A DNA stretch of 64,000 nucleotides, taken from NCBI GenBank assembly GCA_024704765.1, contig JAKMXF010000321.1, forward strand, positions 434,001 to 498,000. Reading direction: 5' to 3'. Under the pieces are notes generated by a model. That model ran no database searches. It was given only the letters and a program-made list of their open reading frames with translations, and was not told the DNA's origin. Origin of the DNA: Oopsacas minuta (lineage: Eukaryota; Animalia; Porifera). Of this stretch, positions 18,464-37,400 are shown one piece after another. The position numbers and the translations under genes are program-made. How positions within the stretch are numbered: position 1 is the stretch's first letter; each line of letters starts with the position of its first letter.

Positions 18464-21400
18464 ATGTCATCTTCTCCTACACAACCTGAGATAGAGCTAG
18501 AGAAGAGCTCTCCATTGAAAGCTAAAGGAGACGGGGAGAATGGACAAGAAGAAGTGGAAAACCTAATTCCTCCAGAAGAAAATGGTAAAACAATAAATTC
18601 GAATGATTTAGGATCGACAGAAGCTCAAACGGAAGGAGACATGACTCAGAGTGACCCAACTAATCCAAGTGAAGGTGATCAACATGATACGAATGAGGTT
18701 GAACAACCTGAACGTAGTGACCCCTCTAGTCAGAACGGAAATGCCGACGATATCATGGATACCACAAACATCCCGCCGGAAGTAGAGAACCAAGCTGACG
18801 ACGTGCAGGTCAATGGAGTAGCTGAAAAGGAGAATTCTAAAGCTGATGACGTAGATTCGGATCCAGAGGATAATCCTGTGATTATAGAAGCTCCTACTTA
18901 TGATTTACAGAAATCTGAGATACAAGCTCAGCTATCCAAACCCTTGCTAAGTGGACAGAAATGGTACCTTATACACATACGTTGGTTCAAACAATGGAAG
19001 CGTTATGTCGGGTATGATAACTGGGATAAAAGTAGTGCGGGAGAAGAGGTAGGACGACCTGGTCCGATTGACAACACCAGTCTCCTGGAACATGCTAAAC
19101 TACGTCGTCATCAAGTAGATGAGATAGATTATAAACTGGTTCCAGAGGACGCTTGGAAGAAACTGGCCTCTTGGTACGGGCTAGCCCCTGATTCACGGGC
19201 TATATCCCGTCGTGTTGTGGAGTATGGGAAGTTTGTGAAGCAATGCAAAGTGGAAATCTATCCTCTGGAATTGAAGGCTTGTCTATTCCCCAAAGAGAGT
19301 GACTTTAAGATCGTACGGATATCTCGTTGTGACACTATTCGTGTCTTAGAAAAGAAAATACGAAAAGCTTTCAGCATAGAACAAAGCAAAGAAGTCCGTG
19401 TTTATAATCGATACATGACGTACACATACGAGCTAATTAAAGATCTGAACCTCGAAGCACAAGATGTAGGTCTGTTTGATGGACAATGTGTTCTTCTAGA
19501 AGTTCAAAACCAAGACGCATCCTGGCCGCGGACTAACCACGCTACTCGTAGCATGCAGATGCCATCTAACGCCGGTGTTACGACACGATCTCAGGCCCAT
19601 TCAACATACTCTTCTACTAATAGTAACTACAACTATCCATATTCTAATAATTATGGATATTATTCGGGTAGACAGCCTACTACACCAGGACTGTGTGGTC
19701 TATCTAATTTAGGAAATACTTGCTTTATGAATTCAGGCCTCCAGTGTCTGATCCATATACCTCCCCTGATCGAGTATTTCGAGAACGATACATACTTGAA
19801 AGAGATAAACACGAAAAATCCGCTCGGTATGAAAGGAGAGCTAGCCAAGTCATTCGGTGAGCTCATCAAGGCCATGTGGTCCGGAGACTACGCCTATTTA
19901 GCCCCTAGAGACTACAAACTGACTGTAGGTAAGTTTGCACCAACTTTCTCAGGCTACGCGCAACAGGACTCCCAAGAACACATATCTTTCCTACTGGACG
20001 GATTACACGAAGATTTGAATAGAGTAATGAACAAACCTTATATAGAGCTTAAGGAGTTAGACAAGCCTGATGATATAGCTGCACAGGAATCATGGGATAG
20101 ACATTTGATGAGAAATAAGTCTATCATAGTAGATACATTCCAAGGACAGTACAAATCAACTCTAGTATGTCCTGAGTGTAATAAAGTTTCTATTACATTT
20201 GATCCATTCATGTATCTATCACTACCGCTTCCTATCAAGAAAACGCGAAACATTAAGCTAACTTTAATAACGCTCAATCCTGCTAACAGACCCACAATAT
20301 TCAAAGTTAAAATACCTAAGAACAGCAGTGTAGCAGAGCTTTGCGAGGAACTATATAAGCTCTGTGGTATTGAGGCTGATCGTCTAGTTGTATGCGATGT
20401 GTATAGTCACCGTTTCCATAAGATATTTGAGCATTCAGAATCCGTGAATGGTATAACGGAAAGAGACGATATATTCGTATACGAAACACCTATTAGCTCT
20501 ATGGATGATTCTGATCTAATATGCCTGCCAATGTATAACCGTGAGCTACGTCGTACTCAATACACTAGCATTGGTACACATTCCTATGTCCATCATTATC
20601 TCTTCGGTATGCCATTAGTTCTTCCTATACCTAGAGATAAAACTACATACAAAGATCTATACAAGATATGTGTGTATTTCATGAGCAGATATATCATTAT
20701 ACCCGAAGATTATAAAGTTCAGTTAAAACAGGCTGCGCAGGCAGAACAAGCTAAAGATGATGTTGATATGGAAAACTCTGATTCTGGTAATGATAGTGAC
20801 GATAAGGAAGATAAGAAATCAAACACAGATATTCAGGATGGTACTATTGATACAAACAATGATCCAGAAACAGGAGGGGATGAGAATCCAATCGAAGATG
20901 AAGCTGTCAGATCGAAACCGGATTCAGATGATGAACCTGTCGGTGAAATGGAAGTCGAAGGAGCTTCAGCCCAGTCCACATCCTCTTACGCATACGTCCC
21001 AGACGATTTTGACATCTCTCAATACCCCGCAGACATGTTCAAACTAAAACTAGTGAATGCATACGGATCTGCCGAGATGGGAGAGCTACGTGATGACGAG
21101 AATTGTTTGAAACTTTTCAACAGATCAGTTATTGCTATGGAATGGAACTCAAAGTATAGACATTTCTACAGTGAATCTTCACTAAGAGATATTTCTGAAG
21201 ATGAAAGTGTACACAAGAAAGACATAAAAAGAGAAATCCACTTGGCTGATTGTATCAAATTATTCACTGAGAAGGAAATATTATCAAAAGATGATCCATG
21301 GTATTGTCCAGTATGTGAGGACTTCAGGCAAGCATCTAAACAACTAGAATTATGGAAAATACCTGATTGTCTAGTAATTCACCTAAAACGCTTTTCATAT

Positions 21401-21805
21401 AATCAATACTGGAGAGACAAACTTGATAGTTTAATTCATTACCCGTTAGAACTCGATATGACTGAATACACACTATCAAAAGCACAGGTCTCTCTTCAAT
21501 ATGAACTCTACGGTGTGTCTAACCATTTCGGAGGTCTGGGGGGTGGTCATTATACTGCATATGCTAAACAAAAGAATAATAGTAAATGGTATAATTTCGA
21601 TGATAGTTCTGTGACTTCATTCGCACAAAACGATTCAGTAGTGACCAAAGCTGGCTACCTTCTATTCTACGTAAAGAAAACATGCATTCCTTTAGCACCA
21701 GCCGTTGCCAAGGAGGAAAAAGTTGAAATCAAAGACGCAGATTCGGATCATGACGATGTTGACGATAATGCTGTCTCCGAATCAGTGGGAAACGACGAAA
21801 CCTAG
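18464..21805 (+). CDS. USP15: Ubiquitin-specific protease USP4/11/15 family (DUSP-UBL-catalytic), intronless
   Basis: DUSP (WYLIHIRWFKQWK, PGPIDN), Cys box GLSNLGNTCFMNS, QQDSQE, His box HFGGLGGGHYTA, WYNFDD. Confidence 0.93.
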   Translation: MSSSPTQPEIELEKSSPLKAKGDGENGQEEVENLIPPEENGKTINSNDLGSTEAQTEGDMTQSDPTNPSEGDQHDTNEVEQPERSDPSSQNGNADDIMDTTNIPPEVENQADDVQVNGVAEKENSKADDVDSDPEDNPVIIEAPTYDLQKSEIQAQLSKPLLSGQKWYLIHIRWFKQWKRYVGYDNWDKSSAGEEVGRPGPIDNTSLLEHAKLRRHQVDEIDYKLVPEDAWKKLASWYGLAPDSRAISRRVVEYGKFVKQCKVEIYPLELKACLFPKESDFKIVRISRCDTIRVLEKKIRKAFSIEQSKEVRVYNRYMTYTYELIKDLNLEAQDVGLFDGQCVLLEVQNQDASWPRTNHATRSMQMPSNAGVTTRSQAHSTYSSTNSNYNYPYSNNYGYYSGRQPTTPGLCGLSNLGNTCFMNSGLQCLIHIPPLIEYFENDTYLKEINTKNPLGMKGELAKSFGELIKAMWSGDYAYLAPRDYKLTVGKFAPTFSGYAQQDSQEHISFLLDGLHEDLNRVMNKPYIELKELDKPDDIAAQESWDRHLMRNKSIIVDTFQGQYKSTLVCPECNKVSITFDPFMYLSLPLPIKKTRNIKLTLITLNPANRPTIFKVKIPKNSSVAELCEELYKLCGIEADRLVVCDVYSHRFHKIFEHSESVNGITERDDIFVYETPISSMDDSDLICLPMYNRELRRTQYTSIGTHSYVHHYLFGMPLVLPIPRDKTTYKDLYKICVYFMSRYIIIPEDYKVQLKQAAQAEQAKDDVDMENSDSGNDSDDKEDKKSNTDIQDGTIDTNNDPETGGDENPIEDEAVRSKPDSDDEPVGEMEVEGASAQSTSSYAYVPDDFDISQYPADMFKLKLVNAYGSAEMGELRDDENCLKLFNRSVIAMEWNSKYRHFYSESSLRDISEDESVHKKDIKREIHLADCIKLFTEKEILSKDDPWYCPVCEDFRQASKQLELWKIPDCLVIHLKRFSYNQYWRDKLDSLIHYPLELDMTEYTLSKAQVSLQYELYGVSNHFGGLGGGHYTAYAKQKNNSKWYNFDDSSVTSFAQNDSVVTKAGYLLFYVKKTCIPLAPAVAKEEKVEIKDADSDHDDVDDNAVSESVGNDET

Positions 21806-22178
21806 TTCTGTGTGATTTTACATATTACTCTGATTTGAATATTCTATTGCTATGAAACAATGGCAATTCTGTTGTACATTGTAACTACTAGTTGATTAGC
21901 TATGTATTTGTACGTATCCTTAACTATTCAATAATAGTGGACTCATTTGAACTTAGCTTTTAATTTTTAGCATCTAAGGTATTGTATGTGTTGTCAGAAG
22001 GATATAGAGTTGATTGTGATTAAACTTCGTGTATGTTACATATAGAATATATTATACATTTGTCTGGGTGGATATAGAGTAGATATCTGATATACAGACA
22101 CGTCTGGAGTATATTTTTTTCATAGGAATTGTCAAAAAATCCAAGGAAACAGTTGCAAGGGGTTGGTAAGTAACTATA

Positions 22179-22348
22179 CAGTGGAGTCTCCCAAAACGGA
22201 CAACTCCATCCAACGGACAAACCTTCTGGCACGGATTGAATTTGCCAAGCATATAATTACTACTTAAGCAGTCTCGGAGGAGCGGACAATTCTCTACAAC
22301 GGACAGATACCATGTCCCAAACGTGTCCGTTATTCAGAGACTCCACTG
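22179..22348. mobile_element. MITE family C (TIR CAGTGGAGTCTC, TA flanks)
   Basis: cagtggagtctc...gagactccactg between TA dinucleotides; internal AACGGACA subrepeats. Confidence 0.88.
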
Positions 22349-22770
22349 TATATATACGTATATATACAGTTATACACCAATTTTAACACATTCTGTGGAC
22401 ACCCTACCATAGGCTGCAGTACAAACTTTGGGATCCTGTGGACCCAGAGGCGTATCCAGGGTGCTGTATTTGCCGCAGCCTTTGTATAAATAAGGTCCCA
22501 AACCGTCAAAGTAACATATTTTCATCGGTTATATGGATCTTATTTTCGCGGTCCCTTGAGCTACGATATAGCGGGAGTTGACTGTGTTTTATATGTTTCT
22601 GCTTATGCTATAATTCCATGTAATTACTCTAATATTTTGAGAAACTGATTAGCATCATTTCATCTTAGTTCTCATTTCATCTTAGTTCTATCAAGTGAGC
22701 ATTAAATACTGTCGAATTGTCATTCTCGAAAAGAAACATTTTACAATTATAACTTGTAAAAACTTACACT

Positions 22771-24849
22771 ATGACAGACGACCAGCTGAGTCAAATGAAA
22801 AAGTCACTTCGAGCAGTTTTGATATCCTGCCCTGAAGGAACTCCTCTTGCTAAGGTGGAATCAGATTACCGATCGTTTATGGGAGAATCACTTTCTTATC
22901 GACAATTTGGGTTTAGAAATATTGAATCTTTCCTCCGTTCTATCCCAGATACTGTCCGTGTAAGCGGGCCAATTGCTTATGGTGTTGCGTGTGAGGAAAT
23001 TAAGCATGTTACGAAGTTAATAAATAATCAAAGAAAAGTAACTTCAAACCTTAAGAATGTTAGAAGAGCGAGGGATAATGCTAGACTTCAACCTTTCTTC
23101 CCTCATCCGAGTATTCCAAACAAATACTCTTGGGGTTCTGGTGCTCCTCAACACGCCCCACTGTACCCTCCTTTGCCTCCTCCTCATCATCCAATACATT
23201 ATTCTCAATACGGTCATCGACACCATGGACCCCCTAGACACCCTGGTCCTCATGGTCCCCAGCAAATGAGACACCCTCCATTTTATCCACCACCAGTGAC
23301 GCCTCCTCTTCCTTCCCATTCAGATTTCCACCCAAGTTCTCATCCTCCGAAATTCCAACCGTCCGCTCCCCTAAATTCTCCACACTCGCACTCCCCAAGT
23401 CCAACTCCTAGCGAAACCGGAGATGAAATAATATTCAGTAACGCTGAAATAATAGAATTGCTTAAAAAGGAAGACGTCTACATCACAAAACAGCTAGTAA
23501 TTATCCTATCTCTAGCATTCCCTTATATATACAGAGGTTCACATATTGCTATTCTAGACCTGAGTATTCCCTTATGTATTGACATTGCTACTGCAGTAGC
23601 TTTTGATTGTGAAGAGGAGCTGGAAGGAACACCAGCTATCCTCGTATGTAAAATGCAAGATGTCTATGACTGCACTCAACTGGAGAAATCTTCTAGAGTT
23701 AAACTATTTAATGTTAATGAATTCAAAAGTACAAAGGTCAAAGTTCTTACAATAAAATTCCCTGAGATGATTAATCTTCTAACCAGTAATAACGATCATT
23801 TCTATAAGTCAGTAACGTTTGTAATATTCGTGGATATTAAACCAGCTCATATGCTGATAATTCATGATCTTCTTCCCCCTGAATTACAATATCTTTTCTT
23901 ATTCACTTCTTCCTGTAACGGAATTTCATATAAGCCTCCACATGTTGTAATACGAAAATGGGGTACTCAATATACAGACGTAGCTTATAATAATGAAACC
24001 ATTATTGATAAGTTAAAGTATAAATTATCTTACCTGAATAATTCTCCTATACCCTCTCCTTCTACGTTACTCCCAACACCCCCTGTTGTGACCCAACAAA
24101 CGACAACACAACCACCACCTCGACCAACCGAACAACAACAACAACAACAGGCCGCCAAGAAGCCCACACCTTCAGAAGAGAATTCTCCAGTTAGAACAAA
24201 CTGTGTTTCCGCTACAGAAAGGACTAGGTTTCCATCTGATGGTCTTAGGCATTTATCCGAAGCTTCTTTCAAAGCTAATATAAACATGTTTATACAAGCA
24301 GGCCCTAATAAAGGTAAAACCTGTCTCCTAATAGAATTTGCTCTTAGTAAAGTTGATGTTACACAAGATATGCTACAAGTAATACTTACTGCTCCTAATC
24401 CCAAAACATCTGGACAATTATTCCTGAGATTAAAGGAATACGTTAATTTACAAGATATAACTGAGGTTAGAGCATTTGGGTATACTGAAGGAAATTTTGA
24501 GAAATTATCTCTTTACATTAGTGAACAAAAGGTTCATGTTTTAGTCATTGAAAATTCTCATTTACCTGCTCTACAATCTAAGAGCCCTGCTTTGTTAAAG
24601 AACTGTAAACTACTGGGCTGTGACGAGCTATATGGGAGTTTTTATACTAAACAAGTGCCTACTACGGTTTCTGGTTGTTTTAGAAAACTTAACCCGAATA
24701 CTACACAGATTATAACGATTGCTCATCCGAGTGACAAGGAGGAAATATTACAATCTCACATGCCGAAGCCTTTCTGGCATATTAAGGAAGAAATTGGAAG
24801 TACTGAACAGAAGGAAAAGTATCTAGTTACGTTTTTCAATAACAATTAA
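22771..24849 (+). CDS. LOTUS/OST-HTH domain + Pro/His-rich linker + two degenerate DEAD-box RecA1-like modules
   Basis: LRAVLISCPEGTPLAKVESDYRSFMGESLSYRQFGFRNIESFLRSIPDTV resembles the TDRD5/TDRD7 LOTUS domain. C-terminal module has AGPNKGKT, LQVILTAPN, CDELY, QIITIAH. Confidence 0.8.
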   Translation: MTDDQLSQMKKSLRAVLISCPEGTPLAKVESDYRSFMGESLSYRQFGFRNIESFLRSIPDTVRVSGPIAYGVACEEIKHVTKLINNQRKVTSNLKNVRRARDNARLQPFFPHPSIPNKYSWGSGAPQHAPLYPPLPPPHHPIHYSQYGHRHHGPPRHPGPHGPQQMRHPPFYPPPVTPPLPSHSDFHPSSHPPKFQPSAPLNSPHSHSPSPTPSETGDEIIFSNAEIIELLKKEDVYITKQLVIILSLAFPYIYRGSHIAILDLSIPLCIDIATAVAFDCEEELEGTPAILVCKMQDVYDCTQLEKSSRVKLFNVNEFKSTKVKVLTIKFPEMINLLTSNNDHFYKSVTFVIFVDIKPAHMLIIHDLLPPELQYLFLFTSSCNGISYKPPHVVIRKWGTQYTDVAYNNETIIDKLKYKLSYLNNSPIPSPSTLLPTPPVVTQQTTTQPPPRPTEQQQQQQAAKKPTPSEENSPVRTNCVSATERTRFPSDGLRHLSEASFKANINMFIQAGPNKGKTCLLIEFALSKVDVTQDMLQVILTAPNPKTSGQLFLRLKEYVNLQDITEVRAFGYTEGNFEKLSLYISEQKVHVLVIENSHLPALQSKSPALLKNCKLLGCDELYGSFYTKQVPTTVSGCFRKLNPNTTQIITIAHPSDKEEILQSHMPKPFWHIKEEIGSTEQKEKYLVTFFNNN

Positions 24850-25068
24850 TTGGCTATATTGACATGTTCGATGGTTAAACTAAATTCTAATCCATAATCT
24901 AACTTTTGCTACCTGTACACAGATATAATCTGTCATGGATCTTCAAGGTTAACCGAATAACTTTTACATATATTTGGTGATTATCTTAATGTTACGCTCT
25001 CTTTTTCTGGGTATTATATCTTTCAATAATTATATCTTTCAATAATTATATCTTGCAAGTTCATTACA

Positions 25069-25254
25069 CAGTGGAGTCTCCAAAAACGGACACTCCGAGA
25101 AGCGGACAACTCCATACAACGGACAAACCTTCTGGCACGGATTGAATTTGCCAAGCATGTAATTACTGCTTAAGCAGTCTCCGAGGAGCGGACAACTCCC
25201 TATAACGGACAGAAGCGATGTCCCCAACGTGTCCGTTATTCGGAGACTTTACTG
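25069..25254. mobile_element. MITE family C copy
   Basis: Very similar to 22179-22348, same orientation. Confidence 0.88.
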
Positions 25255-25515
25255 TATTATCGTTTTGTTTCAGGTCGAGCCGATTACTGCCTGTGAGTTA
25301 CAAGTGTAATGAATAGTATGTTGGCAGCCAATTCCCTCCAGAATTTTGACATTTGTACACATTTTTATATGTAAACTATTGGTTAATTTCCCTTTCTTCT
25401 CTTTTGAAAATTGTTAATTGTTAAATTCTCGCAGTTAGAAACGTGAAAATATTTATTTTAAGTAATTACGTATTCACAGAACAGCAAACATATCTTACAA
25501 CATTCAAAATTCTTA

Positions 25516-26940
25516 TCAATTATCAAAATTGAGAAATCTCATTGCATCGATTGTCCTAATTATAAAATTTAGCAAAGCACCAACACCAAACGGGATAATA
25601 GTATTAAACACACTAATAGAGTAATCTCCCAGAAATGCAATCTCAAAACGTTCTTTACTGGCAGATATCATGCTCAATTCTAGCTTCATATCATTCTTAA
25701 ACTTATCCATACCTTCCTCAATTACAAAATGTGTAATAGCATTTTCATCTTCTGATAGAACTGAGTCACTGAACTTTTCCAATTTTGTATTAAGAGCTAT
25801 TATAGCATCACTCATCAGCCAAACACTTATGAATTGGTACATGTATATGAACGGTGTTCTAAACGCGATCAAAACATCTAGTCTATCATTTGTCTTGCCA
25901 ATTTCTGCCAGTTTCTGGGTGAAACCAATATTATCTGATCCTACATAGCTTGTGAATAGACTGGTTAGTATTAGGAAAACTGCAATGATATTTATTGTAG
26001 CAACGTAGTGAACGACTTTTGAATATTCCTTAACACGACTAGTTAATTCATAATATGCTAGAATTGGCCTTTGAATTTTCAAACTCCAATTTTCCATGTT
26101 GCCTGCTTTTATGAAATCTTTCGATTGCATAACTGCGATTTTAACTTGATATTGTAACTCTTCACATATGTATCTAACTGTAATACATGCAAACACAGGG
26201 CTCAAATGCCAGTGTATTGTGATAATATACGTCAAATATTTGTACCATAAATTGTGTTCCTCGTTGTCATGATTCGTAGGGTTCTTAGTCTCCAATTCTA
26301 GTGGGAAGATTTCTATATACGTGTTAACCCATGATAAGCTTTTAAACTTGCTGAAAATAATACAAGCCATAAGGAATGGGAGAATTATTATAATCAAATA
26401 TGCGAAGAAGATTGCTATTCCAGAGAAGATCTTGTTTTTACTAGCAGGAAAACTGAGTTCGTCTTTTGTAGATGGAGCTAACGGAATTCTGAAAGTTATT
26501 CGCTTGAAAATATCCGAGTTTACAAAAATGAAGTAGCAAGAACCAAGGGAAATAAGCGAATCAATCAAATCTGTAACGAATAATACTTCTCCAATTATAT
26601 CATTATTTAATGAGGTAGAGTTACGACTGTTTCTCACATTCTCATCAATCCAGAATAGAACGAACTGGAATACAACTTGTGCCGTGAAAAGTACGAAAAT
26701 TAACGCTTGACCAATTCTCATAACACATTTTCCAATTTTGTTACATTTTTCCGATTGTTGGTAACGTTTTGGTAAAACTTTGGTTGAATTCGAGATAACA
26801 TATCGAATGAATTCAAGTGTTAAAAAGCTATATAAGATTACTGGAGTATACCATAATAATTTTCTTAGATATAGCACTGAACATGTTACACGATTCCTAC
26901 TGCCCTGGGCGAGTAGAGGGGTCATTTCCTGAGCTAGCAT
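25516..26940 (-). CDS. Multipass membrane protein, gustatory-receptor-like / 7TM ion channel (7TMIC) architecture
   Basis: 474-aa intronless ORF with about 8 hydrophobic segments, a long amphipathic helix after the fifth, and a split terminal segment. The ORF is solid; the family call is inferred. Confidence 0.6.
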   Translation of the reverse strand: MLAQEMTPLLAQGSRNRVTCSVLYLRKLLWYTPVILYSFLTLEFIRYVISNSTKVLPKRYQQSEKCNKIGKCVMRIGQALIFVLFTAQVVFQFVLFWIDENVRNSRNSTSLNNDIIGEVLFVTDLIDSLISLGSCYFIFVNSDIFKRITFRIPLAPSTKDELSFPASKNKIFSGIAIFFAYLIIIILPFLMACIIFSKFKSLSWVNTYIEIFPLELETKNPTNHDNEEHNLWYKYLTYIITIHWHLSPVFACITVRYICEELQYQVKIAVMQSKDFIKAGNMENWSLKIQRPILAYYELTSRVKEYSKVVHYVATINIIAVFLILTSLFTSYVGSDNIGFTQKLAEIGKTNDRLDVLIAFRTPFIYMYQFISVWLMSDAIIALNTKLEKFSDSVLSEDENAITHFVIEEGMDKFKNDMKLELSMISASKERFEIAFLGDYSISVFNTIIPFGVGALLNFIIRTIDAMRFLNFDN

Positions 26941-27254
26941 TCACAATAAATAAATTTATATTTTCACAAAATTTACATAATTTAGTTATTTTATACAATT
27001 ATTATTTTCAGCAATTTCTATATAAGTAATCGGTAATTATTTTATGGATTTTTGTGGTATTTTTCCCAGATTATGTTTACATGATTTGGGAATAAAGTTA
27101 CTCTCAATTTTCCTACACAAATCATGAGAGTAGTTTACTATTACAATTAGTATTACATGATGCCTTATTAAATATCTATGTGTTTTCCTATCCTTTGCAC
27201 TGTTTGATCTATTTTTATTTGATATTTAGACATTCCATAACACACATATATCTA

Positions 27255-29207
27255 ATGTCGCTAACAAACCCAATAAAATCAACTCTAATTAGCCTCATTG
27301 AGGAGCATAAGGTCGATATCGAAGTTATCCCAGATTTCTACTTACACACATTTGCATATCTGTTGGGAAGAGAGAGCCTAGTTCTAGAAGGATTTGAAGT
27401 TAACCTATCTATTGCATTATTTGATTTATTCGTGTTAGAACAAGCTAAAAATTATGAGACTGACAAACATATTCATCTGATATATTTCGGTTCTAATAGC
27501 AGAACAATCTCTAAGATCTCCTCACTAAACCCCCCTATACTCTCAGATAGTACTCCCCCGACTCCTATAGTAGAATTAAATCTACAACAACTATGTCAGT
27601 TAAATCAGAATAATATTCCTCGGCTCAAGGATGTATCCGTTACCCTTGTCTTATTCCTAATCGATGATCTTATTTCTAGTCTTATATTCCAACCGAATTG
27701 GCAAATTATTGTGATACCTATAACAAAGTTTGAAGGTTCATGCCAGAATATATCTGTAAACTTTTTGAAAATTGCACAGAGTAGTGACGTCATTAGAATT
27801 GAGCGAGTGCAAGAACGGATATCTAAAATATCATTAAATGAAAATATTCCTCAATCAGAAATAGCTACACAGAATCATTCTTATCCAACTAATACAATTG
27901 AAATTGTTGCTTCATCTGCTCAATTAATGTGTAAGAACCATGGATTCGCTATAGATATGAATGATACTTTACTTCCCTCGCTTATATACACACTCCTAGG
28001 GGAGAATGTCATTATGCATACTTACAGTGAGATTGACTTTATACATGTAGTCGGTATTGTTGCTTCTGAGAATCAAACCGGTGAATATGGTAATTTATTT
28101 ATTTGTATAGAAAGTCTTGAAGACCGTCAGAAACTCCTAGACTTCAAACGTTCCGTAGATTTCCATGAGTCTCAAATCTTAGAGACAATCAATAACGAAT
28201 CCCATAGCAATTATTTAATTACCGCAACTGAATTTAACCAAATCAAATCCTCACCTATCCTAAAAGGAAAAAGTGGGATAATTGCACTACAATCTTCTAT
28301 ACCAAAAGAATTAACTAGATTTCTAACTAACCTCCCTACTGGCTATACAGTATTAATTGGTACTGCATGTTATAATGAAGATTTGTTAAAGATTATGACC
28401 CAATTGAGATTTGTACTATTCTCTGGTTATCCTATACGTCCTGTTAAATGTGTTGGTTATAAATCACATGAATTTCAACTATTAGATCTCTCTAAACTGC
28501 CTTATATACCATTGTTTAAACCAAGACCATTGCATGCACACTCTCCTAAGGCCAAGGGAAGGACTAAAAAGAAACCTACAAAAAATAGTGAGCCTATCCC
28601 AGACGAGCCTATATTTATAGACAATAGATTTAGCCTTGAAGATCATTCAAATATTCTTTTAGAATCCCTACTACAATCTCCCTGTAATATCGTAGTACAA
28701 TATGTATCTTCATTTGACTGTAATACTTATTTGAATCATTTGATATCAGTAGTTGATATCACCAGTGAGACGCTACAGGTTATTGTCCATGGAGATTTAG
28801 CATCAATGAATTTTATGTTCGAACAATTCGCTACAAGCGATATAAGGCATAACTGTAATGTGTTTTGTTATTCTAGTGGAAAATTGAGTTCTTTAAAATC
28901 ATTACTGATAACTGAGAAGACACAGATCCTATTTATACCATCTAGTGAGTTCCTTGTTGTTAATAGATCAGCTGTTCTGACAGAGAACTGCAGGATTATG
29001 ATGTATATAGCTATTAACAATACTAATGATTTGCTACCAGGAAGTACATTAGCTTGTCTATATGATGAAGTTCAATTGAGTACACAGATTATAGTAGTTA
29101 CGAAAGATCACTTGAGAATAGATTCTAACTATATTAACACACCCTACTGTCATGTACAGGAATCTAGTGAGCTAGTTAAAGAACAATTTATTCTTACTTT
29201 TTTGTAA
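27255..29207 (+). CDS. Pseudo-helicase paralogue 2 (about 3 degenerate RecA1-like modules)
   Basis: Intronless; first in-frame ATG 27255. C-terminal ISVVDITSETLQVIV...TQIIVV...EQFILTFL aligns with LSKVDVTQDMLQVIL...TQIITI...EKYLVTFF of the LOTUS protein. Confidence 0.75.
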   Translation: MSLTNPIKSTLISLIEEHKVDIEVIPDFYLHTFAYLLGRESLVLEGFEVNLSIALFDLFVLEQAKNYETDKHIHLIYFGSNSRTISKISSLNPPILSDSTPPTPIVELNLQQLCQLNQNNIPRLKDVSVTLVLFLIDDLISSLIFQPNWQIIVIPITKFEGSCQNISVNFLKIAQSSDVIRIERVQERISKISLNENIPQSEIATQNHSYPTNTIEIVASSAQLMCKNHGFAIDMNDTLLPSLIYTLLGENVIMHTYSEIDFIHVVGIVASENQTGEYGNLFICIESLEDRQKLLDFKRSVDFHESQILETINNESHSNYLITATEFNQIKSSPILKGKSGIIALQSSIPKELTRFLTNLPTGYTVLIGTACYNEDLLKIMTQLRFVLFSGYPIRPVKCVGYKSHEFQLLDLSKLPYIPLFKPRPLHAHSPKAKGRTKKKPTKNSEPIPDEPIFIDNRFSLEDHSNILLESLLQSPCNIVVQYVSSFDCNTYLNHLISVVDITSETLQVIVHGDLASMNFMFEQFATSDIRHNCNVFCYSSGKLSSLKSLLITEKTQILFIPSSEFLVVNRSAVLTENCRIMMYIAINNTNDLLPGSTLACLYDEVQLSTQIIVVTKDHLRIDSNYINTPYCHVQESSELVKEQFILTFL

Positions 29208-29669: not shown

Positions 29670-32600
29670 ATGGCAAGTTGGGATTCGGACTTTGAATTCC
29701 CTGATTCTCTAGCTAAAACAACCATGGATGAAATGCAATTATCTCAACTCAGTGATAAATATGCTGTAAATATAACCACTTTAAAATCCATTTGTAACAC
29801 AGTTAATAAATATTTCATCAACGGCCGTTCTATTTTGATTACAGAGTACCCTTCCGCGTTACGTACCTGCATACTTGAACACTTCATCTTCAAGTTATTA
29901 CAATTGAATTCTGGAAAGATCATACTTTTACACATTTCTGAAGTTGAACAAGTTTTGATTCCAACGTTAAATATTAAATATTCAAAGTTATTTGGTGGTG
30001 TCTTAACAAATACATTGGATACTACTAAGAGAATATTCACGATATCTAATGACCAATACTCGCATGGATTATTTACATTAATACCCGAACTCACTCGTGA
30101 TAAAATTGTATACTTTTATACTGGAAATAATTCGTTTAACGTCTCGCTAATGCCTGGATTACTGAATGTTCAGAACTTCATTCTTGCTTCTAAGTTATTG
30201 CCGAGCTCAGCTTGTGATATTCCATACTCTTTTGTTCATTTATTCGTAGGAGATCACAATCTTTTACACTCAAATGTGTACTATTTAAATCCTAGTAAAA
30301 CAAAGGTTAACTCAGAGAATTCTGATAGGAAATCAACGCTATCTTTCCCAACAACTATCCAAGGCTCATTATGTGTCCCTCTTGCACCTATTCCAGCCCC
30401 TACATGTACCCCAATCGGAGCTCCTATTGATATCTCATTGAATTCACTCATTCAGAAACACAACATTCCAGAACATACTCGTGTATTAGAATACCTAACC
30501 TGTAATACAATGGAGTGTATGGCGAGAGGAGAATCAGTTGTAATAGACGGATTCTCTCTAGCTGTACTTACTTGTTTGTTAGATTATATAATCACAAAGA
30601 GGTTAGAGACAACTGAAAATTGTTTACGTACTTTGGTTGATTCTACAGAGAATTTTCGATATGAATTGAGCAAACTAGGAGTAATGCAAACTACCGATTT
30701 TTCATATGTAACTCATGATTTTGATTATTCGAAAAGAGTATTATTCATAAAGCTATTAACAATGAGAACTCCTGTCTTGAATTCAGTCCTTGATAATTGT
30801 ATACTGGTTAGTTATACTAAAACTGGCTGTAGTTTAAATAAAGTCAGATTGTTCGATGGTCCAATCGTCTCTCTTACTACATCTAGTAAGCTTTTAGACC
30901 GTACGCTAGCAAATATTACTAAAACTTATACCCGCTTGAGTCATTCAGAAGAAGTAAGGTATGGAGTCATAGATCAAATTCCTGTTCACACCACCAGAGT
31001 AGTAAAACAACAATTTCCAGGACAATACTTCCGAAATTTAGACCAGAAATTAGAAGAAATAATTAATGCAGAACAAGATGCTATCACAGAACCTATAATC
31101 ATTCCAACAGTAAGTACAGCCCCAGATACTGAACTGTTGTTAGGGCTCGTTCAAAAACACAATATTATTGAAGATACCTGTAATCTAGAATATATGATAT
31201 CTACTGTAATGGAATGTATAGAGAGAGGAGATTCAATTGCAATAGAAGGATTCGACAAGAACATACTCACTTGTTTATTGGATTATATTATTGTTAAGAG
31301 AATGGAATCTTTTCGCAGTCCATACTTACACACTATAATTGATTCTACAAAAGTTATTCGAAAACAATTGATAAATTTAGAAATAAGGAGTATTAATGGT
31401 TTTAATGATTCATTAAGTTCACCAAGACAGGTATTATTCACTCAACTGAATCTTTCAAATTTGCATCTACTGAATTCAGAAAATAAAAAGCTTATACTCA
31501 TTAATTATACAAATTATGGTGACAGATTTCCGATTTTGAATCTATTACCCTGTCTCTTTGTATCACTATCGCATTCACGAATTAGTAAAGAGCTGCTAGC
31601 CAAAGTTTCTAGGCCGTTTCTACTCATTACTTATTTGAAAGATTCAAAAACAGTAGAATATAATCGTTTGAATGATTTCAATGTTCATATCCCAAACGAA
31701 CCTCAGAAAACATCAAATTGTATTATGGATACGAATGTGTTACCCAAGAAAATAGATCAATTAATTGATATTGATAGTTTACTACTTCGTCTCTCAAATA
31801 AATATAATTGCTATCTGAATTCAAATGTCTGTTCTACTGTGAATTATTTTATCGAAGAAGGAGAGTCTTTGATTGTCGATAACTTTTCCCAGCTTCAACT
31901 CCTTTATATTATTGATTTCGTTCTTACCATAAAGACGTTTAGAAGGATTTCTTTCTCAGAAACAAAGACTCTGATTTTATGTAGTGAGGAGGATTTACAA
32001 ACTAAACTACAGGTATTGGACGTTATAAGGTCTAGTCAATATTCCTGTATAAACTCAGATGGCACTTTTGATTATAATGGAAAGGTTTTGATATTGCATG
32101 ATATTTCAAGTAAATTTGGTAATATACTAAAGGAACGCTTAAAGTTAGACAAATCTCATCTACTAATACATCTTTACAAAAAGCCACAAGGAAGATTCCA
32201 ACGTAGTTTCTCTCTAATGAACTGCAATGTATTAGGATTGTGTGTAGATAGAACAGAATTATTTCCAAAGAAAAAAACCTTCATTCATCTCACACAGAAT
32301 GAATTTGATCAACTTGAGGTTAATGACTGTAGAGACAATATCAAGAAAACAAAGAGTAAGAATTTTAACTATCCAAATGATGATAAAGTTACAGATGATA
32401 ATAAACTTAAAGATACTCAAAGTATTCTTACAACTTCTGAGAATTTACCTCCTATAACTAACCCTTTATTCCTTAATAAACAGAACCCAATCACTACATT
32501 AATATGCCAGCTGTTTAATAAGCATCAAATAGAACTACTATACACAGATTTGCCTACAGAGCTATATAACGTAACCTTGACTACTCTTATGGATCATAGG

Positions 32601-34340
32601 AATGTTTGTATAGACGGATTTGCTTATACATTAGTAACTCCATTATTGACTGTATTCGCACTTGAATGCGTAGAGCTAGGTATTCCAGTGAAAATACATT
32701 ATGGGAACGACGTTGAATTGCCCGTAGATAAATTGAAAGATATCCCTGTAATTCCAAATATAGATATAATACAAACTTTAACAGAGAATAATGACCCCAG
32801 ACATCTATGGATATTAATTGGAACAGATCATAGACAGCTTAAACAGATTTTCTCTCTTATAAAGACAACTCATCAATGTATTTTCTTGTTATCCTATGCA
32901 GTATCGTTAATATTGGAGCACTCAGGGCTTAATATTACTAGAATATATAAGTTCATGGATTGTGTGTTTGTTTGTTCTTTTAATAAACATTTGCTTTATG
33001 TATCTTCTAAGGATGGATTCGATACAGAAAACTTGCCTTTCTCTCCAAGAATTTTTACTTCAGACACTCCGACCTCTCCAATAGTACCAATGGACATTAC
33101 ACCAGCAAAATCCACTGAAACCCAATTACCAGACAAGATTCGACTCAATATTATGCAAGATTCAATAATTGAAAATTCTTCTGTGAAAATTGATTTTAAT
33201 GATGTAGAAAACACAGATTTTGAATTGTCAGATTCTTGTAACGATTTATCCATACATAAAACTGTATTTCCTGAACTAAATCAGGAGTTTGTTGTTGCAT
33301 TAGAAGAAGCTTGTTTGCCTGAAAATTGTACTGAAAGTTCTACTAGATTAATTAATTTAACAGGTAACCATACTCCTGACATTCCTAATACAGATAATCT
33401 AGAAAGCAATGATGAATCTAATTTAAATATTATCTGTAATAATTCTGAAGATAATGATACTTGTATTGACAGTGATATTTTGAAGGTTGATAGTGAATTG
33501 CTGCAGAAAGAAAGCGATTGTTCAAAAATGGAAGAGAAATTATCTGAGAATAAAGAGGTTGACGAATCTCCTTTGAAAGAGACACAAATTTTGGCTGAAA
33601 GTTCTGCGACTACGAATACGATTTCAACAGAACAAGTTAATGAAAAGAACATATTGTCCACAGATTATATAACAAAACTAGTCTCAGAAGAGCTCTCAGA
33701 ATTATGCCCTGTAGCACTACCAGATAATACAATAATAGAATCAAATACTACCGAGCCTATAATAATATCACCCTCTGACCTCGGCATCCAATTAGTAACT
33801 TCTCCTTTGCAAGCAGGCCTCCATACAATCCTATACAGCACAGATACTACATACTACACCATTATAATACGTCATATAGCTGACGTATTGGATTGTCTAC
33901 GTAATACATTACAGGTTGTAATTACGTCTCAAAACCCTGATATTTGTTCTCAACTTTTAAAACTAGCTTCAATTCACTTACACACAGCCCGTGGATTCTT
34001 ATACAGGGCCGGTTCAATTCACAGTTTGTGTGATTACATTGTACAACAAGAATTACAGATTCTCTCTATTCCAGTTTCATCTCTCGTTTCTTTAATTCAA
34101 ACCGATTCCAGTCTGTTTCTAGATAATCATATTCTAGTTTATGTTGAGGACCCTAAAATCAAATATTTAGATAATCCTATTTTAATCAAAGTTCTGACGA
34201 AGAACATAGCTTTTCAATATATTTTCATATTACCAGACAAGAAACCAAGATTTGATAATTTCCAATCTCCTCATTGTGAAATCAAATTTTCTGATTTCTC
34301 AAAGAATAATGAAAGTTATTTTGTAGAATTTAATTTTTAG
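29670..34340 (+). CDS. Pseudo-helicase paralogue 3 (about 6 degenerate RecA1-like modules), 1556 aa
   Basis: Intronless ORF with internal repeats (LIQKHNI...RGESVVIDGF...LTCLLDYII and LVQKHNI...RGDSIAIEGF...LTCLLDYII) and the shared C-terminal module (VLDCLRNTLQVVI...ESYFVEF). Confidence 0.8.
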   Translation: MASWDSDFEFPDSLAKTTMDEMQLSQLSDKYAVNITTLKSICNTVNKYFINGRSILITEYPSALRTCILEHFIFKLLQLNSGKIILLHISEVEQVLIPTLNIKYSKLFGGVLTNTLDTTKRIFTISNDQYSHGLFTLIPELTRDKIVYFYTGNNSFNVSLMPGLLNVQNFILASKLLPSSACDIPYSFVHLFVGDHNLLHSNVYYLNPSKTKVNSENSDRKSTLSFPTTIQGSLCVPLAPIPAPTCTPIGAPIDISLNSLIQKHNIPEHTRVLEYLTCNTMECMARGESVVIDGFSLAVLTCLLDYIITKRLETTENCLRTLVDSTENFRYELSKLGVMQTTDFSYVTHDFDYSKRVLFIKLLTMRTPVLNSVLDNCILVSYTKTGCSLNKVRLFDGPIVSLTTSSKLLDRTLANITKTYTRLSHSEEVRYGVIDQIPVHTTRVVKQQFPGQYFRNLDQKLEEIINAEQDAITEPIIIPTVSTAPDTELLLGLVQKHNIIEDTCNLEYMISTVMECIERGDSIAIEGFDKNILTCLLDYIIVKRMESFRSPYLHTIIDSTKVIRKQLINLEIRSINGFNDSLSSPRQVLFTQLNLSNLHLLNSENKKLILINYTNYGDRFPILNLLPCLFVSLSHSRISKELLAKVSRPFLLITYLKDSKTVEYNRLNDFNVHIPNEPQKTSNCIMDTNVLPKKIDQLIDIDSLLLRLSNKYNCYLNSNVCSTVNYFIEEGESLIVDNFSQLQLLYIIDFVLTIKTFRRISFSETKTLILCSEEDLQTKLQVLDVIRSSQYSCINSDGTFDYNGKVLILHDISSKFGNILKERLKLDKSHLLIHLYKKPQGRFQRSFSLMNCNVLGLCVDRTELFPKKKTFIHLTQNEFDQLEVNDCRDNIKKTKSKNFNYPNDDKVTDDNKLKDTQSILTTSENLPPITNPLFLNKQNPITTLICQLFNKHQIELLYTDLPTELYNVTLTTLMDHRNVCIDGFAYTLVTPLLTVFALECVELGIPVKIHYGNDVELPVDKLKDIPVIPNIDIIQTLTENNDPRHLWILIGTDHRQLKQIFSLIKTTHQCIFLLSYAVSLILEHSGLNITRIYKFMDCVFVCSFNKHLLYVSSKDGFDTENLPFSPRIFTSDTPTSPIVPMDITPAKSTETQLPDKIRLNIMQDSIIENSSVKIDFNDVENTDFELSDSCNDLSIHKTVFPELNQEFVVALEEACLPENCTESSTRLINLTGNHTPDIPNTDNLESNDESNLNIICNNSEDNDTCIDSDILKVDSELLQKESDCSKMEEKLSENKEVDESPLKETQILAESSATTNTISTEQVNEKNILSTDYITKLVSEELSELCPVALPDNTIIESNTTEPIIISPSDLGIQLVTSPLQAGLHTILYSTDTTYYTIIIRHIADVLDCLRNTLQVVITSQNPDICSQLLKLASIHLHTARGFLYRAGSIHSLCDYIVQQELQILSIPVSSLVSLIQTDSSLFLDNHILVYVEDPKIKYLDNPILIKVLTKNIAFQYIFILPDKKPRFDNFQSPHCEIKFSDFSKNNESYFVEFNF

Positions 34341-34490: not shown

Positions 34491-37400
34491 ATGTCAACTA
34501 CTACCAATACTGATAAAGAACAAGCAATTCCAGCTAACATAATCTCGTGTAGTGAATTGGAGAATTTACCAGATAATTCTAGTATTCCCACTAACGAAGT
34601 TACACCGAATGTAAAGGAACAAATATTTAGTAATATTCCTACAGAACAAATTATACAAAACTTCCAAGAACTTAAACTTAACACTGAACTATATACGAAC
34701 CTAAAAGTTAACGGTTATGTCAAACCAACAGACATTCAATCACACATTCTATTCCCGTTAGTTCAAGGTAAATCAATGCTAATTGAATCTAAACCAGGGA
34801 CTGGTAAGCTAACCTCACTCTATATCTTATTACTACAACGCTGTAGACTCAGTAGCATGCGTATACAAGGTATTATCGTTACAGGAAATACGGTGTATTG
34901 TTCAACAATTGAAATGAATCTAAGCTTGCTATCAGAAGAAGTCACGGCGATTAACCTAGATGAACTTGAGGTCACTGACCCAGGAGAGGTAGCAGACCAC
35001 CAATTTATGATGGGAAGTGAGCAGAGCATTGCATTACTTTCCGGGGTAATTAACGTCATTAAAATACCTATAATACTATGTCTATACAATATTAATATAC
35101 AGCAGAGCGTTTTAATGGATAAAATAACTTCAAATTTGACAAAATTCAATCAGATCGTTATTATGAGAGATCAAACTATTACCATAGACTACAAATTGAT
35201 TACAAAACTCCTTACACAAAATGCAATGCATTTATCAGTTGATATGCAAATGTCTGGTCCTAGTCATTTAACGGGGATGTTTAAACAAATCCACCAGATA
35301 GAAACTATCCCCAAACCACAAGATAACAGTAAGCAAGATATCTCACCAGCAAATACAGAATATTCACCTGCAAAACAGGAACAAATCCAAGAAACGCCGA
35401 ATTTAGAAGTATTACGCAAACTCGAGTCAGGAGACAAGATAATTGAATTCTTCCTTAAACACGATTTATCATTAAAAGTCCCAACCTTTTATGTTTTCGT
35501 CTTCAACTATTTATTCAAAGGTTTGAGTGTTGTGCAAACAGGATACAAATCTGTTGAACGTATAAACTTAATAAGTTTAGTTGTAAAAGAGTTTGACAGA
35601 CATCTGACAGCTCCCGTACACGTAGTAATATGTCATGATGGTAAAGAATTCAAAGATTCTAAATTATTGGCAAACCCATCCGTGTACATTTTTCAAGATG
35701 AAGAAACATTAAATGATATTCCTAAAGACAAGACGATAATAATTGCATCAAGCTCGAAAACTTTATCAGTTCTCAAATCTTTCCCTAATTTATTCCACTC
35801 AACTGGTCGTATTATCGTCTTCTACAATATTTCCATTGGTAAATTCAAAGATATTACACAGCTATTTCCACAAGGGTTGCTGTTCCTTGCTATGCTTAAA
35901 TGTCAAATAGAATCAATAGCTGGTGATATTCAAATACCATTTGTAAATGTAGCAAAGCATGAAAATAACCTCAACATTGAGCCTTTCTCGGGAGCTAAGA
36001 TATCACCAGACGATTTGAGTTGTTTAGAAGAGCTTACTCGTGAGAAAACGAGTTTACCCCAGAAATTTAACACAAACCAAGATTTCCATAAATCCAGATT
36101 CCATACTACGAACAGAGAAGACCATAAGTTTGAAGATTCACGTACAATGCCGCGCGTCGTTAGTATAAATCTATTACAAACAATCTCAGCTAAACACGGG
36201 ATAAATCCTAAAGCAATCTTACCATTCTACCCAGAAGTATTCTCATTCTCTATTCGGGGAGATAATATTCTTCTAATTGGGTTCCAGCAGTCGGAATATT
36301 CGTCTATTGTTAATATAGTTAGTTTAGAGAGAGTTAGTAATAGTACTGAGCCTGGCTGTCAAGTACTAGTATACTATGGTTCTGGGGAAGAAGCAGATCT
36401 CTGTGATTATCCTAATTGTAAACGTCTGCTGTCTGGAAATGAGAATTCTATCTTAGACATATGTCCGTTAGTTAGTGTTGATACTATACGGGATATAACA
36501 CGTTTGTATACCAAGCAAAATGCGAAATTTTACGCCCTTAAGAAGTTAATTGTTCTCGTGGGAGTAACACTTGATGAGTGTATTGAGATAATTTCTAATC
36601 AGATACCGTGTCAGCTGATATTCATTTTGACTGATATTCCAACTGATGACCATTTTAATGATTTACCCGTTTCATTTGTGAGATTTCTAAATCACAACAA
36701 TTCTGTTAAGATTGAGAAAGTTGGACAAGATGATTCTCTGTTAACTGACGAAAATACACAAGAATCTTCTCCCGAATTGGTTAATGAATCACCATCAGAT
36801 ATCCCAGATACAATCGATAATACATCTAAGCCTGTTCGCCCCACACAACAAACATCTATGGACAACGAATTTCCTCAACAAACAACCTCATTAGCGCGAG
36901 CTATACTTGTCAGAAATAATGAGACAGTAGTAGTTGATAATATGGAATTTTTCACTACAGCATTATCCCATACAATTGGTGGAAATAATATTCTAATACG
37001 CGAATTCTCCAAGGAAATTATCACTAGCTTTGTAACGATATTATACCAAGATTACTGTGTTAATATCCCAGGCAATGACTATGTGCTATTCTGTCTTGGT
37101 TCACGAATATCCGATTTATTTTTGCCATCATTTAAGTGTCCATCTTCTCTCTGGCTCCAGAACGATAAAAACATCTCCGTACAGCCCAATTTTCAAAAAG
37201 AAGCATATTTTCTAACAATTACCAGACTCCTAAATATGATACACACAGAACTTGAATGTTTAGTAAATCGAACTTGGCTGATAGTATTCATTGGTCTTTC
37301 ACATAAAGAAATTGAATCATGTATCCCATACATTCCCCTCTCCAATCAGTATTTGTTTATCCTAAGCATAGAACATCCTCAGTTTAAGAAGTTCATGTCA

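Follow-up and report, generated by a model that had tools for sequence, protein, structure and literature searches.

A glass-sponge gene joining an extended LOTUS domain to two helicase first-lobe domains: a candidate adaptor for a Vasa-type ATPase

What might a protein do that begins with the kind of domain by which Vasa is recruited and ends in pieces of a helicase? The question is raised by a gene, here called G1, that lies in a stretch of 64,000 nucleotides of Oopsacas minuta DNA (the window, whose positions are used throughout). Oskar, Tejas/TDRD5, Tapas/TDRD7 and MIP/EGGD are extended LOTUS (eLOTUS) proteins that localise and activate the germline helicase Vasa, and the rear halves of these proteins, consisting of Tudor domains, the OSK domain or disordered regions, determine the destination of Vasa. 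The original prediction for this locus was an extended LOTUS domain fused to a single half-helicase, which could dock on Vasa and offer its own first lobe in trans.

The gene and its orthologues

G1 is intronless, and we divided it as follows.

22771 to 24849, plus strand: G1, whole intronless ORF, 692 aa and stop, uninterrupted
22771 to 22989, plus strand: LOTUS/OST-HTH winged-helix core, residues 1-73, from Pfam, PDB sequence matches and fold
22990 to 23088, plus strand: eLOTUS extension, helix alpha5 (about residues 75-89) and basic tail, from alignment with TDRD5 and conservation
23089 to 23412, plus strand: IDR1, Pro/His-rich disordered linker, residues 106-214, from composition and pLDDT
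23413 to 24081, plus strand: middle module, predicted degenerate SF2 helicase lobe 1 (RecA1-like), residues 215-437, from a structure model
24082 to 24237, plus strand: IDR2, Q/P/S/T-rich linker, residues 438-489, from composition and conservation
24238 to 24846, plus strand: C-module, RecA1-like, residues 490-692, from Pfam DEAD, fold and conserved GKT/DE

The gene occupies a single 2.08-kb ORF in a region of 35-39% GC and has seven orthologues with 50-64% identity, all of which keep the order of eLOTUS domain, dead RecA1 and Walker-bearing RecA1. Its synteny with an array of genes downstream is also conserved in related genomes. Two of the orthologues, P0006 and P0007, were shortened by gene callers. 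Over the whole ORF dN/dS is 0.18, with 0.10 in the middle module and C-module against 0.38-0.50 in the linkers and 0.10-0.20 across the folded parts; these values come from the relatives L002 and L004 only, dS between the window and its relatives being saturated and so undefined. Both lobe-1 domains of G1 are under strong purifying selection.

Read coverage is suggestive of transcription. Run X4 gave contigs only over positions 22757-24959, at a depth of about 480-1030 and with zero coverage of the unique flanks, compared with a flat depth of about 80 in runs X1 and X3 from the same sample. The DNA-like runs span the gene evenly and without a break. That G1 is an artefact, be it a wrongly joined piece of TDRD7, a chimera of the assembly or a pseudogene in decay, has a negligible probability in view of the single ORF, the three-domain order found in seven genomes, the low dN/dS of the folded parts and the even DNA coverage. 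The first of these possibilities, raised together with the original prediction, is excluded by the uninterrupted frame, the equal architecture in the seven related genomes and the conserved synteny. G1 is a real and conserved gene, probably of glass-sponge origin. The product of its USP neighbour is about 50% identical to those of the named animals listed, which belong to several phyla, and no single phylum stands out.

The extended LOTUS domain

The LOTUS core that had been proposed was recovered by several routes. PF12872 (Pfam) matches residues 6-65 with an E-value of 8.6e-14 and a score of 51.6 bits, the cut-off being 23.8, and sequence matches in the PDB include Tejas (8wxs, 3e-10), TDRD7 (3rco, 2e-9) and TDRD5 (3s93, 2e-4), with the family profile reaching the Tejas LOTUS domain 8wxs at 7e-15. 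The AF2 model of full-length G1 is poor (pLDDT 47) and was used only for the LOTUS domain and the C-module, at about residues 1-63 and 510-616. Modelled residues 1-76 resemble TDRD5 (Z 10.5), TDRD7 (10.4), Tejas (10.1) and Oskar (8.7), with an rmsd of 1.8-2.3 A; in the matches of Z 10.1-10.5 it is 1.8-2.2 A, with 72-74 residues superposed.

To decide on the type of LOTUS domain, we used the eLOTUS definition of Jeske (2017, PMC5458760), and key interface positions from the same work and from Garbelyanski (2026). The helix IKHVTKLINNQRK, singled out in the original prediction as following the core, corresponds to residues 77-89 (nt 22999-23037). Residues 74-88 align with helix alpha5 of human TDRD5 (3s93), and residues 76-92 are almost invariant among the five full-length sequences aligned, making this the best-conserved part of the LOTUS domain. 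AF2 predicts a helix at residues 75-104 with low confidence (pLDDT about 40), which is compatible with, and no proof of, folding upon binding.

At the interface positions, A15 lies opposite S16 of Tejas and A162 of Oskar and is Ser in the orthologues. V80 is invariant and occupies the position of I85 in Tejas and L228 in Oskar; the eLOTUS domains that have been tested carry Ile or Leu there, not Val. Eight residues further on, R88 is likewise invariant (compare I85/K93 in Tejas and L228/K236 in Oskar), and it begins a basic tail in which seven of the 19 residues from 88 to 106 are Lys or Arg. By these sequence features, the proposed assignment of the G1 LOTUS domain to the extended type is supported.

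Helicase first lobes in G1 and its neighbours

Behind the LOTUS domain, residues 106-214 form the Pro/His-rich disordered linker that had been noticed (31% Pro, 15% His; AF2 pLDDT about 30). It is poorly conserved, with a mean pairwise identity of 38% and a dN/dS of 0.50, and is expanded by PHGP repeats in the L006 orthologue. Residues 215-437 had also been taken as linker and form instead a conserved folded module. Its AF2 model has a pLDDT of 88.9 and a pTM of 0.86, and its best structural matches all belong to helicase lobe 1 (UvsW, Z 14.0; ALC1, 13.5; the DEAD domain of DDX10, 12.5), with Foldseek E-values as low as 8e-5. The module lacks both the P-loop and DE, a loop of four residues standing in the place of the former, and is homologous to internal modules of the neighbouring genes G2-G4. 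Its profile had no match among PDB sequences. Comparison of internal-module and C-module profiles was marginal, giving a probability of 0.2% and an E-value of 0.35 with seven sequences, and 15-18% and about 0.0015 with 28 modules, in a register unlike that read by eye. Because this comparison is marginal and its register differs, the lobe-1 assignment rests on the structure model and not on sequence; by its predicted fold, the middle module gives G1 another helicase lobe-1 domain, one that is degenerate throughout. The second linker, IDR2, has a mean identity of 33% and a dN/dS of 0.38, and contains the poly-Q tract of the original prediction as a run of six (QQQQQQ, residues 455-460, nt 24133-24150) that is not conserved in the orthologues.

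The C-module still has both Walker motifs of a nucleotide-binding site. Walker A (AGPNKGKT, nt 24298-24321) contains GKT at residues 515-517 and Walker B (nt 24622-24633) reads DELY at residues 618-621, both as first described. The Pfam DEAD profile reaches residues 504-621 with a score below threshold (18 bits, E 0.0025), and modelled residues 507-625 resemble domain 1 of DEAD-box proteins (DDX6, Z 11.3; DDX20, 11.2; eIF4A, 10.1). All seven orthologues preserve GKT and DE unchanged; about 35% of the columns of the module are invariant, and five chosen positions would all be so by chance in about 0.5% of cases on a naive estimate. The Q motif, which reads adenine, had been reported missing and only a relic of it was seen, PS.(G/A)L against the P(S/T).IQ of DEAD-box proteins, with the Gln replaced in all orthologues. 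Of the motifs that contact RNA, Ia has changed from PTRELA to PNPKTSG and Ib from TPGR to ENSH; motif III, which serves coupling, has changed from SAT to IAH, and the GG of lobe 1 has become GY.

No second lobe follows. Pfam gave no match to PF00271 (RecA2/Helicase_C, motifs IV-VI) in G1, and the chain stops about 40 residues past the position of motif III, where RecA2 would begin; without lobe 2, G1 therefore has no arginine finger and no motifs IV-VI. There is no Tudor domain in G1 by Pfam at E-values up to 1, as had been stated, and neither Pfam nor fold comparison matched an OSK (SGNH-like) domain in the protein. The remainder of the chain after the LOTUS domain is made of the two lobe-1 domains and linkers. 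The description of this rear half as RecA1 only is thus right as to the presence of lobe 1 without RecA2/Helicase_C and wrong as to number, there being two such domains and not one.

A LOTUS domain coupled to a lobe with Walker motifs could also act on RNA independently of Vasa, the LOTUS domain binding G-rich or G-quadruplex RNA and the C-module serving as a nucleotide-gated switch or weak NTPase on an RNP. LOTUS domains are reported to bind G-quadruplex RNA (PMC7498356), the basic tail could touch RNA, and Walker A and B are conserved. We nevertheless regard this as quite unlikely: the Vasa-type extension and interface residues are present and are conserved more strongly than the rest of the domain, the canonical RNA motifs of the helicase lobe are lost, and the Tejas eLOTUS domain alone bound neither the ssRNA nor the dsRNA tested (Garbelyanski, 2026).

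Three further intronless genes adjoin G1 downstream, and bring 14 further modules to a total of about 16 across the four.

27180 to 29207, plus strand: G2, 675 aa, two internal modules, then a C-module that lacks both GKT and DE
29670 to 34340, plus strand: G3, 1556 aa, five internal modules, then a C-module that lacks both GKT and DE
34491 to 38192, plus strand: G4, 1233 aa, N-terminal lobe 1 that is eIF4A-like and keeps a Q-motif relic, three internal modules, then a C-module that has both GKT and DE

The C-modules of G1 and G4 share 29% identity (E 1e-21), and RecA2 is absent from the whole G1-G4 array. The N-terminal module of G4 is the best preserved of the family, with a Pfam DEAD score of 58.6 bits and eIF4A-I/II as the top PDB matches of G4 residues 52-134. 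In an exhaustive search of 1.84 billion proteins, the G1 profile found its own family and one eIF4A, and nothing else; the C-module aligns motif by motif with this eIF4A-family member at a pairwise identity of about 20%. A C-module profile (A4) that placed eIF4A-III and eIF4A-I at the top in the PDB was discarded as circular, because it included the canonical eIF4A-like sequence P0013. The same profile less P0013 (A7) found nothing in the PDB at E <= 0.01, and the C-module of G4 alone had no match there. At the level of sequence, the link between the C-module family and DEAD-box proteins is therefore weak. The family has been amplified locally, and its best-preserved module, the N-terminus of G4, resembles eIF4A and not Vasa.

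These observations bear directly on the idea of a split helicase or competitor, in which the C-module would replace the RecA1 of an open Vasa molecule; the outcome would be an ATP site of hybrid make-up, or else a complex that is locked and inhibited. Invariant Walker A and B motifs in all orthologues speak for it, as does the fact that eLOTUS domains recognise Vasa in its open form and have an effect even on its isolated C-terminal domain (Garbelyanski, 2026, among others), and the linkers would be long and flexible enough for the C-module to get there. The idea is nonetheless very unlikely, given the loss of motifs Ia, Ib and III and the change of GG to GY, elements by which lobe 1 meets RNA and its partner lobe 2 when a helicase closes. 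The C-module also lacks the Q motif, the ancestor of the family was an eIF4A-like lobe and not Vasa, and an extra folded module lies between it and the LOTUS domain. G2 and G3, moreover, retain the C-module without any nucleotide motifs, and because the module persists there, its conserved role is not catalytic. A broader version of the idea supposes that in glass sponges a new class of scaffold, made of eLOTUS domains fused to eIF4A-derived, lobe-1-only modules, took the place of the Tudor-based one of TDRD5/7 or was added to it, and that the C-module of G1, binding nucleotide, engages the RecA2 of the recruited Vasa as a surrogate lobe 1 in trans, yielding a two-lobe assembly, hybrid or locked, and gating the DEAD-box ATPase; we consider this, too, a long shot.

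The array suggests another partner for the eLOTUS domain, namely the RecA-like modules of its own family, bound either in cis, where it would be a latch that inhibits G1 itself, or in trans, on G2-G4, to build chains or networks. MUT-16 and MUT-15 provide a documented case of an eLOTUS domain bound to a DEAD-box-like scaffold that is catalytically dead, targets would be plentiful in the four neighbouring genes, and their synteny with G1 is conserved. Known eLOTUS partners, however, offer a RecA2 surface, whereas the modules here match lobe 1 and the array has no RecA2, and the conserved signature residues of the domain are those for binding Vasa. On balance we find such a target unlikely.

A possible adaptor and its relation to known systems

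The reading to which we incline, with slightly better than even confidence, is that G1 is a lineage-specific adaptor of germ-granule type and not a helicase. Because it has two helicase first halves and no second half, the role of a scaffold is much more probable for it than that of an enzyme that unwinds RNA. By analogy with characterised eLOTUS proteins, its eLOTUS domain would bind a Vasa-type DEAD-box ATPase at lobe 2 (RecA2), and may through the basic tail aid the ATPase in engaging RNA, as in Oskar, Tejas and TDRD5/7. The dead and half-dead lobes would act as protein-interaction modules, the last possibly as a nucleotide-binding switch, and may link the recruited ATPase to an assembly of the pseudo-helicase proteins G2-G4, with which G1 has the C-module in common. 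The intact Walker A and B sequences could nevertheless signify a real nucleotide-dependent activity that the term scaffold masks.

TDRD5 and TDRD7 (Tejas and Tapas) offer the nearest comparison. They have the closest LOTUS sequences and folds, they too have an N-terminal eLOTUS domain followed by disordered sequence, and a Vasa-recruiting scaffold role is presumed for G1 by analogy with them; G1 differs in having no Tudor domains and, in their stead, two helicase lobe-1 domains at the rear. Oskar is similar in being lineage-restricted and in being built of an eLOTUS domain, a linker that is disordered and a domain of enzymatic descent whose catalysis has been lost, its OSK domain being SGNH-like (2010 survey of LOTUS architectures). 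This domain has an SGNH hydrolase fold, however, in contrast to the helicase lobe 1 of G1, and the two proteins are unrelated in sequence outside LOTUS.

In Caenorhabditis elegans, the eLOTUS domain of MUT-16 binds the pseudohelicase MUT-15, a small-RNA-pathway scaffold. Here, as in G1, an eLOTUS domain is coupled to a DEAD-box-like pseudohelicase with degenerate Q and catalytic motifs. MUT-15, however, retains the two lobes RecA1 and RecA2, the second of which is where the eLOTUS domain binds in trans, whereas G1 has the eLOTUS domain and the lobes in one chain and lacks RecA2, the lobe to which eLOTUS binds. As for eIF4A, it is the top match of the G4 N-terminus, and an eIF4A-family member is the one canonical helicase that the G1 profile retrieved; G1 differs from it in having lobe 1 only, in the loss of the Q motif, Ia, Ib and III, and in the absence of motifs IV-VI.

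G1 thus shows a different kind of rear half for an eLOTUS protein, two helicase first lobes and no second, one of them with an intact nucleotide-binding site; this combination of eLOTUS with helicase lobe 1 is not listed in the 2010 survey of LOTUS architectures. By the exhaustive profile search, the module family is confined to one small animal lineage, and pseudo-helicase scaffolds of the G1 type would here have arisen from eIF4A through loss of lobe 2 and tandem amplification. G1 is therefore a case for asking how such scaffolds arise, whether a lone RecA1 lobe with Walker motifs acts as a switch, and how Vasa and LOTUS proteins are wired in an animal that branched early and does not set a germline apart.

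Domain order of the G1 protein

The gene under study, G1, is a single stop-free open frame of 692 codons (window 22771-24849, plus strand), and all of the elements named in the original prediction were located in its product:

residues 6-65, OST-HTH/LOTUS domain
residues 77-89, helix IKHVTKLINNQRK
residues 106-214, linker rich in Pro (31%) and His (15%)
residues 455-460, Q6 run
residues 515-517, GKT
residues 618-621, DELY

The LOTUS domain is confirmed by a Pfam match above cut-off (E 8.6e-14; 51.6 bits against 23.8), and among solved sequences it is closest to its counterparts in Drosophila Tejas (8wxs, E 3e-10), TDRD7 (3rco, 2lh9) and TDRD5 (3s93). Pfam also gave a DEAD match below threshold at residues 504-621 (18 bits, E 0.0025), and no Helicase_C match anywhere in G1. 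Alignment with six relatives, found by word search at 50-60% identity, delimits three conserved blocks: the LOTUS region (1-105), a middle module (about 215-437) and a C-terminal module (490-692). The predicted layout was thus right about the first and last of these, but overlooked the folded block between them.

Because the model of the whole protein was poor (pLDDT 47), the middle block was modelled alone, using related modules from inside the neighbouring genes, gathered by iterated HMM search (29 aligned). This model reached pLDDT 88.9 and pTM 0.86. Foldseek against the PDB returned 31 structures with E <= 0.001, almost all of them the ATP-binding lobe of SF2 helicases (including Mtr4, Ski2 and the DEAD domains of BstDEAD, DDX21, DDX41, DDX53 and DDX10), and one a RadA recombinase filament. 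An independent all-against-all structural search agrees on helicase lobe 1 (RecA1).

Structural matches of the G1 middle module
UvsW lobe 1: Z 14.0, 171 aligned residues
ALC1 lobe 1: Z 13.5, 174 aligned residues
DDX10 DEAD domain: Z 12.5, 181 aligned residues
eIF4A: Z 12.0, 194 aligned residues

In both the module alignment and the model, a four-residue loop replaces the GKT loop after the pre-P-loop strand, and the DE pair is absent. Canonical nucleotide binding by this module is ruled out.

The modelled core of the C-module (residues 507-625, pLDDT 70-83) matches DEAD-box domain 1 (DDX6, Z 11.3; DDX20, 11.2; eIF4A, 10.1). Its motifs were read by alignment with P0013, a canonical eIF4A-family protein.

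Helicase motifs, canonical form and G1 C-module
Q: P(S/T).IQ; PSDGL (relic, Gln lost)
I: A-x4-GKT; AGPNKGKT (kept)
Ia: PTRELA; PNPKTSG (lost)
GG: GG; GY
Ib: TPGR; ENSH (lost)
II: DEAD; DELY (DE kept)
III: SAT; IAH (lost)

The terminal module was therefore correctly described as having GKT and DE and no Q motif. The chain ends about 40 residues past motif III, where lobe 2 (RecA2) would be expected to begin, which, with the missing Helicase_C match, upholds the claim of a RecA1-only helicase half. Together with the motif losses, these observations establish the order of G1 as extended LOTUS (eLOTUS), linker, dead lobe 1, linker, and lobe 1 with Walker A/B. A helicase function is impossible.

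The module family of G1 to G4

G1 and its downstream paralogues contain about 16 modules in total:

G1: one internal module and a C-module
G2 (window 27180-29207): two internal modules and a C-module
G3 (window 29670-34340): five internal modules and a C-module
G4 (window 34491-38192): three internal modules, an eIF4A-like N-terminal lobe and a C-module

Between G1 and G2 lies a 474-aa multi-pass membrane protein matching no Pfam family (window 25516-26940, minus strand). Among the relatives' contigs, L001 carries a minus-strand gene of similar size (541 aa) after G1, and in L002 and L004 G1 is followed by a plus-strand gene of 479-480 aa. Just downstream of the array is a 279-aa ORF (window 39255-40094, plus strand) that matches a Striatin-type coiled coil below threshold (28.7 bits, cut-off 29.4) and, weakly, a BED zinc finger at its C-terminal end.

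The C-modules of G1 and G4 share 29% identity (E 1e-21), those of G2 and G3 being more remotely related to that of G1. G4 exceeds the Pfam DEAD threshold (58.6 bits), and its N-terminal lobe (residues 52-134), whose top PDB matches are eIF4A-I and eIF4A-II, retains KPTDIQ, which resembles a Q motif, and GTGKL, a near-Walker A with Leu for Thr; within the family this lobe comes closest to eIF4A. GKT and DE are present in all G1 orthologues and in the C-module of G4, and missing from the C-modules of G2, G3 and the G4 orthologue P0009.

An exhaustive search of 1.84 billion representative proteins with a profile of the G1 middle and C-modules yielded nine proteins: three G1 orthologue representatives, G4, P0009, relatives resembling G2 or G3, and one genuine eIF4A-family helicase. 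The latter, the divergent P0013 (L005 185-1618), is the only canonical helicase reached; it is extended by about 90 residues at the N-terminus, reads SHTQELA instead of PTRELA, and comes from a 3.8-kb contig of metagenome record KOPF15-1. On these results and the eIF4A matches of G4, the family is restricted to one lineage and likely descends from an eIF4A-type lobe 1, not from Vasa.

The original prediction was that G1 could dock on the RecA2 of Vasa and offer its own RecA1 in trans, as a competitor or composite ATPase. The open form of Vasa is indeed what eLOTUS domains bind, but a composite ATPase is disfavoured by the motif losses in the C-module, by its eIF4A origin, and by the fact that G2 and G3 have kept this module with none of the nucleotide motifs.

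Conservation and possible transcription of G1

Two of the relatives are publicly called from an internal Met (P0007, 392 aa; P0006, 478 aa). Their contigs hold full ORFs of 690 aa (L004 9107-11179) and 741 aa (L006 9212-11437), both beginning with a LOTUS domain, so the full architecture is present in 7/7; in L006 the first linker is enlarged into a long PHGP-type repeat. Synteny is kept in relatives: Enkurin, USP4/15, G1, then the array. The neighbour of G1 is:

window 18464-21805, plus strand, USP4/15 orthologue, 1113 aa, intronless, DUSP-UBL-UCH

Among the matches listed, this USP is 78-84% identical to relatives carrying G1 orthologues (metagenome contigs; P0015, at 83%, shares its contig with P0003) and about 50% identical to named orthologues from echinoderms, brachiopods, molluscs, chordates, arthropods and corals. 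G1, in contrast, is just 50-64% identical to its relatives, and is thus fast-evolving yet constrained. L002 and L004 were the only pair close enough to measure dN/dS (dS 0.63).

dN/dS between L002 and L004
Whole gene: 0.18
LOTUS: 0.20
Middle module: 0.10
C-module: 0.10
Linker 1: 0.50
Linker 2: 0.38

Two sequencing runs of one sample (X1, X3) cover G1 and its unique flanks evenly, at a depth of about 70-100. Contigs of a third run of that sample, X4, cover only 22757-24959, at about 480-1030, with zero on the unique flanks. For this run of unrecorded type, the pattern is suggestive, being that expected of an RNA library with an unspliced G1 transcript of about 2.2 kb.

A 158-nt direct repeat (91% identity) flanks G1 at window 22194-22351 and 25100-25257. 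This repeat and the intergenic pieces 22114-22683 and 24964-25305 are very high-copy dispersed repeats, with k-mer depths that lie in the thousands and reach about 29,000 across the four runs. The window has weaker copies at 9.1-15.9 kb and 45.7-53.1 kb.

The extended LOTUS domain and an adaptor reading

eLOTUS domains carry a C-terminal alpha5 extension required for Vasa binding, with interface residues at Oskar A162 (Ala/Ser) and L228 (Leu/Ile) (Jeske et al., 2017; PMC5458760). The Tejas counterparts are S16 and I85; a Lys/Arg (Tejas K93, Oskar K236) is conserved, and stimulation depends on a disordered basic tail (Garbelyanski et al., 2026). In G1, A15 aligns with Tejas S16 (Ser in the orthologues), and V80 with an Ile of TDRD5 in an alignment that extends through alpha5. 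R88 lies eight residues beyond V80, the spacing of Tejas 85/93 and Oskar 228/236. Seven Lys/Arg fall within residues 88-106, and residues 76-92 are almost invariant among five full-length sequences. On every one of these sequence-level points the domain reads as an eLOTUS, as predicted, the sole deviation being Val for Ile/Leu, and we infer that it binds Vasa. A further rival would have it target modules of its own family; however, the eLOTUS partners known so far are bound through RecA2, and the modules of G1-G4 are all lobe 1.

The most economical reading of G1 is an adaptor. Its eLOTUS would recruit a Vasa-type DEAD-box ATPase, with the basic tail assisting activation, and both helicase-derived lobes, conserved yet stripped of RNA-binding and coupling motifs, would serve as interaction modules common to the paralogous array. 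That Walker A/B never varies in the last lobe suggests that this lobe binds nucleotide as a switch; hydrolysis is unlikely because the arginine finger is missing. There is precedent for such an adaptor in Oskar, where an eLOTUS is paired with a catalytically dead SGNH-like domain, and in C. elegans MUT-16, whose eLOTUS holds MUT-15, a DEAD-box-like pseudohelicase with a scaffold role.

The kinds of domain in G1 are already known. Their combination is missing from the 2010 catalogue of LOTUS architectures, and the exhaustive search found no counterpart outside the lineage. What is new is an eLOTUS joined to lobe-1-only pseudo-helicase modules within an amplified local family, and we class G1 among the eLOTUS scaffold proteins.
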